Part shown: in pieces, positions 37,015 through 50,580 of the stretch
Position numbering within the stretch: position 1 is the first letter of the stretch
Layout: each line of letters opens with the position of its first letter
Assembly (NCBI RefSeq): GCF_003704095.1
Contig: NW_020846447.1
Span: forward strand, 248,001-303,599
DNA length: 55,599 bases
Direction: 5' to 3'
DNA from: Pocillopora damicornis
Taxonomy: Eukaryota
Position numbers and translations under genes: made by a program
The notes under the pieces: generated by a model
Told to the model about the DNA's origin: nothing
Database searches by the model: none
Seen by the model: the letters and a program-made list of their open reading frames with translations, nothing else

Positions 37015-38353
37015 TCACTCGTGCAATCCAAACACTTCGTAATCTGTTACTTTAAATTTCTTTTTCCCCGTTAGGAATGTCGCCTGCTGGCCTGGAGGAG
37101 TGTCAAACGATCGGCCGAGATGGCTAAAACCTGATATATTTCCTTCTCCGTCCCTTGATATGATTTCCAGGTCGCGCTGTCCTCCAAATTTGGGTCCCAG
37201 GCTGCTATCACAGTAAAAACCTTTCAGATGAATTTTGTTTATCGGCATTTTAGTAGGTCCCAGGCCATGAGGATTAACCATGCTGAATAGGAATGCTTTT
37301 GATTGTGTGACCCACGTGACGCGACCTAGAAAAGTAACTTTTATTTCAGAAACTCTATTAGAGGTATTGTTAGCTATGGTACCTTCATGTTGATTAATGT
37401 TTGTACCGACGTTTCGTCATAAAATGTTTATATATTCATGCTATTGTCTAGGCTTTCTGCTGAATCAACGCCGTACGTTCGTGCAAGAACGAAAGACTAT
37501 ATCTGCCAATCCTTTTTATTTAAATTTATGAACCAGAAAGTAAGGAAGACTTAAACTTTATTAAAGTTGTCTCCTGAAAAAATGTAGAGGTAAACGGTCA
37601 GATGCTGTACCAACTATAAAGAACTGGCCAGGTATGTTTTTTATAGGCCGTGTACCAGTGAGCGGTCCGAATTTTACTTGGTCAGCAATGGTGGATGTGT
37701 CATACGTGAAGATACAGTAAGGAAGTGGATAAATGTTGGTTGATAAATTCTTCAAGTGCAACTGACTTACCACTCATCCATGGCATGTCTGTGAATCCAC
37801 CGAAAATATTGTTCACGCTGTTTACAATGGTGACAGTGGGTCCTTTGTTGTCACATTTGGAATGAAAGCTTTCGGCCGAAGAGCCATCGCGAGAAGCTCG
37901 GTACAGAAGGACCCAGGTCCTACGCAAAGAAGGCAACCAGGCTTGAAGCACCCGGCAATGCTCAATAGAAGTTAAAATCTTGGATTCCTGAAATGGTTCA
38001 GGAGATTTGTTGTTTGCTTGAAGTGAAGATCCAAAAAAACTTGGCTCTTTTAACTCGTTAATAATTCCTGTTATCTGGTAGAAATCAGCCTCTTCTTCGA
38101 TTTCCCTCAGAATTTTTTCTTCATCCGGCAAAGTCAATTTCCCAGTTCGTAGGTAATTGAGTATAAATCGAAAGTGAGTTCCATCCCGGTCGATAAAGAA
38201 GGCGCCGTCCTCAGAAGGTCTCATTTCAAACTTTCCCGAAAACATGGCGGCAAGCATTGAGTCTGGATCTTTGGTCAGTGTTTGAAGACTTGTTGTGAAG
38301 TAATGACCGCCAACATTGAGTTTTACAGTCGACGAATACATACCACCATTCAT
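37015..38353 (-). CDS. BTB/POZ (KCTD-type) + TLDc domain protein, copy A (about 297 aa; may have an upstream exon)
   Basis: Exons 38353-37771 and 37325-37015 (phase 1). BTB motif VKLNVGG...FIDRDGTHFRFILNYLR. TLDc motifs WVLLYRASRDG...FHSKCDNKGPT...IFGGF, FLFSMVN, GPKFG, YEVF. An acceptor-like site near 38385 and an open frame upstream allow an N-terminal extension. Confidence 0.88.
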
Positions 38354-48282: not shown

Positions 48283-50580
48283 TCAATGTCGGATCCCAAA
48301 CACTTCATAATTTGTTATTTGAAAACGTCTACTCCCTGTAAAGAATCTTCTCTGCTCGTCTCCTAAGTCGGGAGGACATTTATAAGAACAGTCAAGATAA
48401 AGTGAACCGTGGCGCCCTGTGATAGAGAGATCGTGTCCGTTGCCAAACGTTGGTCCATAATCACTGTGACATTTAATGGCGGAAAGCTGTTGATATGAAT
48501 CTTTAAGTGGCAGTTTAGTTGAACCCAGGCCTAGTGGGTTGACCAAACTGAACAAGAACGCCTCGGTACAGGCTTTGTAACCTCGATGCAGTCCGCCTAA
48601 TGATGAGATAAAATTTCAAATTAATCCAAATACCTGCTTTTAGAATATGCTGTGTAACATCGATGTGGCTTACCTAATGATGAAGTAAAGTTAATACCTG
48701 CACCTGGGAAAGAAAACCTTATTGCACGCGTGCTGTGACAAGAGAATCTGCATCATGACAGACAAATCCTCTGATGAACACCAAAAATTATGCTATCACT
48801 CTTCGCTCGACTTGATGCGCACTTAGTGAGATAAAAAATGTAATATCTCCCTTGAGATTTCGATACGACTCCGAGGATTACTCGACAAATTTGACTTAGA
48901 ATTCTGAATGACTATCAGATATTAAGCAGTTTCAAATGTTTGTTCATTTAATTATAAGCTTACGTGAAACCGGTTTAAACGAAGAGAGGACACTTTTGTG
49001 TGAGCCGGGTGACAAAACGAAACTACTCTTATAAAATACTCTGCTCCTTGCCTTCTTGCATACTAATTGAAAAAGCAACCCAGCCTGCCCCCAAAAAAAT
49101 TTCAGTCCACCACTGTCTGGCTGCCAAGTGACATTTAAAGACAATGGAAGACGTTGGCACTTCGATACCTTTTGTACGCTCAATCTAAATGTCTTGTTAA
49201 CATTAACATTTGAAAATGACTTTCAGTGAACTCGTGAACTTTTTTCGTCTTTACTAATCATTTGAAAGAAAAAGTTGCCATCATGGTGTTACGTTTGTAT
49301 TTTAAACAAGAACAAAGTTAATTTTATGCTTGCGTTACCAAAAAGTTATCGCCTTCAAATGGAAAAAAAATAAATTCACGGGTCACGTACATATTTGAAG
49401 GCAAATCACGCCTCACGAATCATGCTCGCCTTCCTGTGAAGTTCTCGAGTCACGTTACTTTTGGCCGTCACGTCACATATAAACCCTTTTGCCAACCTTT
49501 ATGGCGATAAAATTCTGTTTGAACTGTCGAATTTTATAATGACCGACCTCCAGCAATAAAAAATTCTTGATTTTCTTGCCTTTACTACGTAGAGATCCTG
49601 CAATCACGACAATGATTTGAAAATCGTTGCTTTCATACGCAAATTTACCGCTCACGCAATTTTGTCTTCGCTGGCTAATACAAGCGGCGTGACGCAGCAG
49701 AATGAAGGATAAGAGTGAAGAGATTGACAAGAATTTGTCATAGAAGTAAAGGAATAAACTTTATGTAGAAACTGAAACGTAAGTTGCTAATTGTACGGAA
49801 AGGTTTAAAGATTTGGTCAGGCACACTATGTCGTACTTCGGTTTACGAAAACTTACTTTGCCATGGCATCTCTGTAAATCCTCCGAAGATGTTGTTTCCA
49901 CTTTTAACAATGGTAACCGTGGGTCCTTTGTCGTCACAATTGGCGTGGAAATTTGCAGCTTCGAAACCATCTCGAGTAGCGCGATACAGAAGACACCACT
50001 CTCCGCGAAACTCAGACAACCAACCTAACAATACTCGTCGATGGTCTTCATTTGTCAGGATAACCGAGTCTTCAAAAGGATTGTGTAAAGGTCTAACTGC
50101 TTGAATTTCAGCTTTAGTGGACTTCATCTCGTCGATTATTCCTTGAATCTGATAAAACTCAGCTTCTTCCGCAAGTTCTTTTAGAAATGTTGCTCCATCT
50201 GGCAAAGTTAATTTCCCAGTGCGGAGATAATTGAGTATAAACCGGAAGTGAGTTCCGTCTCGATCGATAAAGAAAGCGCCGTCTTCAGAAGCTTTCATTT
50301 CAAATCTCCCTGAAAACATAGCGGCCAACATGGAGTTTGGATCCTTGGTCAGCGTTTGAACACTTGTTGTGAAGGTATGTCCTCCGACATTGAGTTTCAC
50401 GGTCGAAGAAAAGTGAACATGTTCCAGTTTCTTCGATATGGCATCCATGGCTTCCTGCTCTTGGCGAAGTCTTGTTGTTTCGTCCTGTAGAATTTTAAAC
50501 ACTTCTTTAATGTGATATTCCACGTCTGCGAGCTTTTGATTGCCTTTTTGTCCTTCATTTAGACGCTTTTCATCAGCCAT
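48283..50580 (-). CDS. Coiled-coil + BTB/POZ + TLDc protein, copy C (about 345 aa)
   Basis: ATG at 50580 in aaaATGGC context; exons 50580-49857 and 48596-48283 (phase 1). WCLLYRATRDG, CDDKGPT, AFLFSLVNP, YGPTFGNGHDL, YEVF. Confidence 0.9.

Follow-up and report, generated by a model that had tools for sequence, protein, structure and literature searches.

Three genes on the minus strand of a 55,599 nt stretch of the Pocillopora damicornis genome (contig NW_020846447.1, positions 248,001 to 303,599; hereafter the window) each fuse a KCTD/T1-type BTB domain to a C-terminal TLDc domain. The three, which we call g1, g2 and g3, lie at 37015-50580 of the window and belong to a family that is unstudied and that in this coral is large, tandemly expanding and weakly constrained in the C-terminal half (C-half) of its TLDc domain. 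That the architecture exists and is expressed we regard as practically certain. As an annotation of an expanded, uncharacterised family the finding is well supported, and the mechanism is only proposed: an oligomeric V-ATPase regulator that may also engage Cullin-3 (Cul3), an explanation by analogy to which, taken as a whole, we assign a probability of roughly 0.45.

All three genes are intact and share one build, two coding exons separated by a GT..AG intron (Table 1). Exon lengths place the intron after the first base of a codon (phase 1) in each, and both exons are open up to the stop codon. The g1 donor reads ...ATGAGTG/GTAAGT, directly after 37771, and the acceptor before its exon 2 reads ...TTTTCTAG/; the corresponding donors and acceptors are /GTAAGG after 44757 and ...TTCACAG/ in g2, and /GTAAGT after 49857 and ...CATTAG/ in g3. 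Predicted products are 297 (g1), 362 (g2) and 345 (g3) residues long, and the stored protein P0001 is the same open reading frame (ORF) as g3 exon 1. A coiled-coil segment opens the products of g2 and g3 and is absent from that of g1, for which a tblastn search of the window (word size 2, E≤50; queries, the first 62-68 residues of the g2 and g3 products) gave no credible upstream coiled-coil exon. The g1 protein may start at 38353, or an upstream exon may have diverged too far for detection; likewise its N-terminal helix may have been lost or may be supplied by an unseen upstream exon. Just 5' of the g1 ATG, at 38354-38383, the frame is open and holds a weak echo of the end of the g3 coiled coil (a tblastn high-scoring pair from 38383), which is preceded by an AG dinucleotide.

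Table 1. Features of the BTB-TLDc genes and of a related remnant (window positions).
Feature	Position	Strand	Description
g1 exon 1	37771-38353	-	ATG at 38353; BTB_2 ~38063-38326, linker, N-terminal half of TLDc (sequence, Pfam)
g1 intron	37326-37770	-	445 nt, GT..AG, phase 1 (sequence reading only)
g1 exon 2	37015-37325	-	C-half of TLDc and stop; TLD E 0.002, profile 109-169
g2 exon 1, coding part	44757-45516	-	first ATG at 45516; coiled-coil segment, BTB_2 ~45052-45321, N-terminal half of TLDc
g2 intron	44360-44756	-	397 nt, GT..AG, phase 1; RNA joint 44359->44757
g2 exon 2	44031-44359	-	C-half of TLDc and stop; TLD E 2e-7, profile 83-170; RNA contigs
g3 exon 1	49857-50580	-	ATG at 50580; coiled-coil segment, BTB_2 ~50137-50400, N-terminal half of TLDc
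g3 intron	48597-49856	-	1260 nt, GT..AG, phase 1; RNA joints
g3 exon 2	48283-48596	-	C-half of TLDc and stop; TLD E 0.0013
Exon-2-like remnant of a fourth member	46278-46454	-	internal stop; 37% identical to g2 exon 2, E 4e-7

Domain content was established with Pfam profiles (cut-offs of 21.4 bits for BTB_2, 24.5 bits for TLD and 20.5 bits for the classical BTB profile, PF00651). The window sequence was searched exon by exon, and exons were never joined for any search. The exon-1 products of g1, g2 and g3 match BTB_2 (PF02214) at E of 1.9e-23, 4.6e-22 and 2.7e-23 (78.6-83 bits), and the same products match TLD (PF07534) at 2.1e-16, 2.3e-17 and 1.3e-13 (51.7-63.9 bits; positions 2-80 of the 170 in the profile). 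TLD matches resume in the exon-2 products (E 0.002, 2e-7 and 0.0013; 18.5, 31.5 and 19.2 bits; profile positions 83 or 108 to 170), among which that of g2 alone exceeds the curated cut-off by itself. Coverage by the two exons indicates that the domain is cut by the intron near profile position 78-80. In a natural orthologue, P0023, the TLD match runs over positions 4-169 of 170 (E 8e-24, 84.9 bits) and is accompanied by BTB_2, and both Pfam domains are found in all 34 natural full-length relatives that were aligned (alignment A1). An earlier sequence-only reading of this DNA had described three intact same-strand genes with a common two-exon, phase-1 build, each joining a KCTD/T1-type BTB to TLDc, and had named the BTB_2 and TLD profiles as the check; coordinates, splice sites and open frames read from the sequence agree with that description, and the profiles, run exon by exon, recover both domains in every gene and TLD in P0023 as well.

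Transcript evidence comes from RNA contigs of 4 runs from 4 studies, aligned to 44020-50019 (g2 and g3; g1 lies outside). These runs contain 38-55% of the sampled words of 44020-50600. The g2 joint, 44359->44757, which skips 397 nt (CT..AC on the plus strand, equivalent to GT..AG on the minus strand), appears in all 4 runs, and the 1260 nt g3 joint appears in 3 of the 4 (48595->49856 in X1 and X10, 48594->49855 in X3), run X9 giving g3 no cover. Contigs of g2 extend 5' to at least 45584-45589, and the 3' untranslated region of g3 reaches down to ~47818 in one run. Because they are contigs, they show that the spliced form exists and do not give its level. Transcripts joining exon 1 to exon 2, whose absence the sequence-only reading had named as a refutation, are thus seen for g2 and g3. 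A protein homology search with g1 exon 1 found no spliced g1 product; the hits were all exon-1 ORF calls, 97-98% identical.

P0023, a 344 aa protein encoded on a 1887 nt Logan contig, has 90% identity to g3 exon 1, crosses the exon junction as modelled and runs into the match of g3 exon 2; being continuous over the junction, it lends the gene model independent support. The idea that we are dealing with an artefact, chance ORFs or domains mis-joined from neighbouring genes with no true fusion protein behind them, is barely credible: RNA contigs span the junctions, both domains occur together in 34/34 natural full-length proteins from corals, sponges, a rotifer and Amoebozoa, and the structural model of P0023 is confident over both. 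The first two of these observations refute it.

Several further features were noted around g2 and g3. No exon 1 was found to match the remnant at 46278-46454, and an ORF at 46359-46583 is without a Pfam match. A 1722 nt RNA contig of run X1 (record 3) covers the stretch from the g2 donor at 44757 up to 45829 and then 46268-46916, crossing the remnant; the other runs end near 45584-45589. g2 may thus have a long alternative leader or may share a read-through transcript. The part that the X1 contig leaves out, 45830-46267, is a high-copy interspersed repeat 5' of g2 (core ~45944-46141), with a summed contig depth of >11,000-54,000 in all 4 RNA runs and, in the genome, 4195 first-look candidates, of which 40 scored copies are 77-88% identical over ~200 bp. 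This segment (438 nt, with GT..AG ends on the plus strand) is skipped by contigs of 2 runs; it may be spliced out of an antisense or read-through transcript as an intron, or be an insertion missing in those individuals. Within the g3 intron, at 48650-48720, a ~40 nt stretch resembles a copy of the acceptor region; it lies ~100 nt 5' of the true acceptor, ends in ...CATTAG followed by GT, and looks like a partial local duplication.

A structural model was built with AlphaFold2 for P0023, using the alignment of 34 natural full-length relatives, and so describes the orthologue rather than the window proteins. It has a mean pLDDT of 91.1 and comprises a helix (residues 2-54), BTB (60-160) and TLDc (178-343), with a low-confidence linker at ~161-164. 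Its halves were compared with 48,161 PDB representatives by a VIA structural search, in which the TLDc query (residues 165-344) matched zebrafish OXR2 (4acj; Z 20.5, root-mean-square deviation (rmsd) 2.1, 157 aligned), NCOA7B on rat V1 (7uzk_T; Z 20.0), mEAK7 on bovine V1 (7une_U; Z 18.7), Skywalker/TBC1D24 (6r82_B; Z 18.4), yeast Oxr1 on V1 (7fde_P; Z 16.1) and V-ATPase-bound Rtc5p (9moy_R; Z 15.0). The BTB half matched KCTD10 (Z 17.2, rmsd 1.5 over 101 residues), KCTD17 (Z 16.8) and Cul3-bound KCTD7 (Z 16.1). Foldseek placed it beside KCTD BTBs at TM-scores of 0.88-0.93 (rmsd 1.2-1.5 Å); run against the PDB, it listed BTB matches alone and no TLDc match. As modelled, the TLDc fold is complete and the BTB is of the T1/KCTD fold.

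The coral proteins thereby share the complete TLDc fold (Z 15-20.5) with the characterised TLDc proteins OXR1, NCOA7, TBC1D24, MEAK7/TLDC1, TLDC2, Oxr1p and Rtc5p, and four of the TLDc structures matched were solved bound to V1 or to the V-ATPase. They differ in their N-terminal partner, here a KCTD-type BTB and there LysM/GRAM, TBC or EF-hand-like domains; in the weak constraint on the C-half; and in number, five TLDc proteins being listed for mammals in the accessible part of one paper (PMC13570293) as against the dozens of copies here. On the BTB side, the BTB_2 domains of human KCTD10, KCTD13 and TNFAIP1 (the BACURD Cul3 adaptors) are 43-46% identical to the coral BTB. In place of the KCTD-type C-terminal domain, however, the coral proteins carry TLDc, and a long helix precedes the BTB in g2 and g3; membership of the KCTD family proper is ruled out by the region that follows the BTB.

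A BTB-superfamily domain also lies N-terminal to TLDc in the insect BTB-BACK-TLDc proteins, silkworm (Bombyx) Bmmp and Drosophila CG7102, whose phenotype is small wings, with the BTB indispensable (bioRxiv 10.1101/2021.07.26.453796); the accessible part of that preprint does not address V-ATPase or Cul3. The insect proteins combine classical BTB (PF00651) with BACK, whereas the products of g1, g2 and g3 score 12.7, 16.9 and 14.1 bits against PF00651, under the cut-off, and give no match to BACK (PF07707) at E≤1. These values exclude them from the Bmmp/CG7102 family, and in the ESM Atlas the insect-type and BTB_2-TLD architectures fall into separate clusters. Beyond that preprint, our literature search found no functional study of proteins with BTB and TLDc; for TLDc with a KCTD-type BTB it returned gene lists only, its coverage stopping short of the supplements of coral expression studies. 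The words 'BTB' and 'ubiquitin' are absent from the text of a 2026 TLDc review.

The sequence-only reading had expected just this, an architecture already present in automated annotations and lacking a functional description in print, and on both counts it was right: the databases hold it from many eukaryotes, always under automatic names ('uncharacterized', 'KCTD21', 'KCTD6', 'KCTD17-like', 'TLDc domain-containing'). In taking the three genes as the family it was too narrow. Searched against its own genome, g3 exon 1 gives 114 matches at E≤1e-5 and the TLD profile 81, both being counts of matches, not genes, and both lower bounds. Most of the 81 end or start at profile position 76-82, which indicates that the same intron position recurs. 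At least 21 copies have both parts open, namely 20 that were paired by script (an open exon with BTB and the TLDc N-terminal half (N-half) and an open TLDc C-half exon within 3 kb) and g1, which had been lost to a filter. Besides the window trio they form a plus-strand cluster ~100 kb upstream on the same contig (C3082), clusters on contigs C1417 and C235, and a single copy on C4004; broken family pieces occur in other clusters too. Dozens of other TLD matches, in small tandem groups on C173, C42, C328, C629, C1053, C386, C481, C513, C3396 and others, adjoin no BTB_2 match from the query, and many of these BTB_2-free matches are split at the same profile position, ~78-80. The expansion of TLDc in this genome, as judged from such matches, exceeds the BTB-TLDc family.

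Outside the genome, 1679 proteins match at E≤1e-3 in a 90%-clustered collection, and among 50%-identity representatives there are 20,975 matches at E≤1e-3 and 327 at E≤1e-30. Relatives come from corals and an anemone (Stylophora, Pocillopora, Porites, Oculina, Montipora, Exaiptasia), the sponges Corticium and Oscarella, the rotifer Adineta and the Amoebozoa Cavostelium, Ceratiomyxa, Clastostelium and Rhizamoeba; unnamed BTB_2-TLD proteins are 33-42% identical over almost their full length. The ESM Atlas adds diatom clusters and a distinct BTB+BACK+TLD cluster in arthropods and cnidarians. To judge from these matches, the architecture is old and widespread and no speciality of corals. Some coral proteins (P0039, P0003, P0004, P0030) carry 2, 3 or 4 tandem BTB_2 domains with or without TLDc, and a doubled BTB is also found in the upstream cluster on the window's own contig; several BTBs per chain might stand in for oligomerisation.

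Pairwise identities among g1, g2 and g3 are 55-68% in exon 1 and 40-46% in exon 2 (g1 exon 2 is 46% identical to that of g2 and 40% to that of g3), and g3 is nearer to Oculina proteins (73%) than to g1 or g2. An IQ-TREE phylogeny of the shared region from BTB to the TLDc N-half (31 rows; multi-BTB proteins omitted, P0278 and P0270 lost for want of the anchor motif) divides the genome's copies into two supported groups, and each of the clusters, C1417, C235 and upstream C3082, is a clade by itself. The window trio behaves differently: g1, g2 and g3 are scattered without resolution among Oculina genes, g2 on a long branch (0.74), and no supported node joins them. A recent tandem triplication is ruled out by these identities and by the lack of a supported grouping, and the sequence comparison indicates that the three are old, diverged paralogues.

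Might such paralogues be products of a birth-and-death process, some of them, possibly g1, with little specific function and drifting toward pseudogenes? Consistent with this are the stop-bearing remnant exon between g2 and g3, the broken pieces in other clusters, the long g2 branch, and the state of g1, which lacks the coiled-coil segment yet keeps a weak in-frame echo of it 5' of its ATG and has no spliced product in the protein homology search. In all three genes, nevertheless, the frames are open, the splice sites canonical and the fold motifs conserved; spliced transcripts exist for g2 and g3; other contigs preserve the g1 exon-1 ORF at 97-98% identity, in clusters that number up to 189 sequences; and the BTB is constrained (ratios of nonsynonymous to synonymous substitution, dN/dS, of 0.04-0.36). 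Drift of this kind is thus very improbable as an account of the family, and a pseudogene reading of the genes is ruled out by the RNA splice joints and the natural full-length proteins.

The proteins are cytosolic; a long N-terminal helix, present in g2 and g3 and absent from g1, comes before the KCTD/T1-type BTB, and a short variable linker leads from there to the complete TLDc. For their action we propose the following. The BTB, aided by the helix, would assemble a homo-oligomer as KCTD BTBs do, so that several TLDc domains would be shown at once; these, by analogy with every TLDc tested, would dock on the V1 sector and tune V-ATPase assembly or activity, and the BTB might in addition recruit Cul3, yielding a ubiquitin ligase that acts at the pump. 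Local tandem duplication enlarges the family, and the copies then change fastest in the TLDc C-half.

For the docking step, the premise of the sequence-only reading that characterised TLDc proteins bind the V-ATPase agrees with the literature: in the accessible parts of the two sources, all five mammalian and both yeast TLDc proteins interact with it (PMC8608904, PMC11066047). In mEAK7, according to the portion available, TLDc touches subunits A, B1 and E1, with Gly276 contacting B1 (PMC9263379), and V-ATPase pull-down by NCOA7 is abolished by G815A, G845A and G896A and weakened by S817A, L926A and E938A (PMC8608904, in part). Equivalent residues were located in the family alignments and in alignments of the family profile with zebrafish OXR2 and with mEAK7. 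Those of G815 (the Gly of RDG/RHG, which aligns also with mEAK7 Gly276), G845 (the first Gly of FGG) and E938 (the Glu of EVF) are invariant or nearly so, and the L926 position is a conserved F/L; for G896 no sequence alignment was obtained, and a Gly-rich GPTFGxG bend is present in the family. The nearest TLDc by sequence is that of mEAK7 (single-sequence E 3.7e-5, profile E 6.4e-10). On this analogy, V-ATPase docking by these paralogues is putative, at odds slightly short of even.

KCTD proteins that act as Cul3 adaptors are homo-oligomers contacting the N-terminal domain of Cul3 through the alpha2-beta3 loop and the alpha4-alpha5 hairpin. By phmmer, the solved BTBs nearest to the coral domain are KCTD10 (E 2.2e-22) and KCTD13 (E 2.9e-20), followed by KCTD1, KCTD15 and KCTD7 (~1e-19), and the alignment to KCTD10 and KCTD13 is gap-free through the alpha2-beta3 loop, which has the same length. 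The variable alpha2-beta3 loop holds most Cul3 contacts of KCTDs, according to the accessible part of one review (PMC10856315), and its gap-free alignment is mild, sequence-level support for Cul3 binding. We put putative Cul3 recruitment, again an argument from analogy, at an even bet, and regard its combination with V-ATPase docking in the same protein, the mechanism put forward by the sequence-only reading, as plausible though unlikely.

Several observations weigh against this proposal. As to Cul3, the non-binders KCTD1 and KCTD15 are almost as near to the coral BTB as KCTD10 and KCTD13, and the available text of the same review has KCTD binders and non-binders inseparable by overall sequence (PMC10856315). 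As to the pump, most of the mutated NCOA7 residues are buried, as Eaton et al. state in the part of their paper available (PMC8608904), and the conserved residues, being mostly buried, indicate an intact fold and not pump binding; the position of the one surface-exposed, partial-effect residue, S817, differs between the genes (g1 S, g2 K, g3 E). The structural alignments with solved TLDc domains show 13-25% identity, and while the N-half aligns to solved TLDc proteins by sequence, the C-half does so nowhere except along a below-threshold stretch of zebrafish OXR2. With 81 or more TLD matches in the genome, it is not obvious that one conserved target would need so many copies.

The distribution of constraint along the protein adds to these points. 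Among 19 in-genome copies (g3, as locus L001, is omitted, its locus in that set having part of exon 2 only), pairwise identity averages 0.67 for the BTB, 0.54 and 0.425 for the N-half and C-half of TLDc, and 0.07 for the linker. dN/dS was estimated by NG86 for those pairs, 11 of 190, whose dS lies below 1.2 in each of the three regions (g1 not in the set), giving the BTB range stated above, 0.18-0.66 for the TLDc N-half and 0.25-1.21 for the C-half, which exceeds the BTB in 10/11 pairs. Constraint declines from the BTB to the TLDc C-half. In the three youngest pairs the C-half ratio is 0.94, 1.21 and 0.86, near 1 and a poor fit with a single conserved target; older pairs lie at 0.25-0.68. Genes recur among the pairs and the regions compared are short, so such ratios mean weak constraint and not proven positive selection. 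Variants in RNA contigs of other individuals, counted among the rows listed, include 10 nonsynonymous and 3 synonymous changes in g3 exon 2, a further difficulty for a conserved target, and 1 and 2 in the covered part of g3 exon 1; in g2 the respective counts are 1 and 2 in exon 2 and 2 and 1 in exon 1. The motifs that define the C-half fold (FLFSL.NP, YGPTFG, DL.I, F.TG..F.V..EVF) stay conserved.

The main rival reading takes the proteins for diversifying adaptors. In it the conserved BTB would couple to Cul3 or just oligomerise, and the TLDc would have been re-used to recognise varied targets apart from the V-ATPase, changing fast as it does so; such targets might be proteins of microbes or symbionts, or host proteins specific to a lineage. 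MATH-BTB adaptors of nematodes and plants have expanded in a pattern that this would resemble. The fall in identity toward the C-half, its high dN/dS, the excess of nonsynonymous variants in g3 exon 2, the tandem clusters that each form a clade, and the stop-bearing remnants, which suggest birth and death of copies, can all be read in this way, and a separate large TLD expansion is reported in Entamoeba invadens, with 210 PF07534 genes (PMC4053983, in the part available). A dN/dS of ~1 over ~90 codons in three non-independent pairs, however, is no demonstration of positive selection, and the lower ratios of the older pairs mean that relaxed constraint after duplication explains the data equally well. 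The C-half also keeps its fold-defining motifs, and the TLDc literature consulted, as far as its accessible parts go, names no partner of TLDc other than the V-ATPase. We consider such adaptors somewhat unlikely, and retain the V-ATPase regulator proposed above as the best explanation.

Elsewhere in the window, three other long ORFs were recognised by eye: one resembling a monothiol glutaredoxin (3682-4224, minus strand), one a sphingolipid desaturase (7152-8021, plus strand) and one a seven-transmembrane receptor (53702-54640, minus strand).

Control of V-ATPase assembly is increasingly seen to rest mainly on TLDc proteins, and the KCTD proteins form one of the major classes of Cul3 adaptors. 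A fusion of the two, found from amoebae to corals and missing in vertebrates and yeast, would offer a direct route to ask whether the pump is controlled via ubiquitination or via multivalent clamping. A bolder, and improbable, possibility is the following: if the conserved BTB couples to Cul3 while the C-terminal face of TLDc diversifies, these proteins would make up a large, fast-turnover set of ubiquitin-ligase adaptors in corals and, independently, in rotifers and amoebae, with targets that might be different V-ATPase populations, including the symbiosome pump, or non-self proteins. Such a set would derive from a domain for which V-ATPase binding is the only role known so far. The symbiosome of corals is acidified by the V-ATPase, and for that reason a family dozens strong could bear on the physiology of symbiosis.

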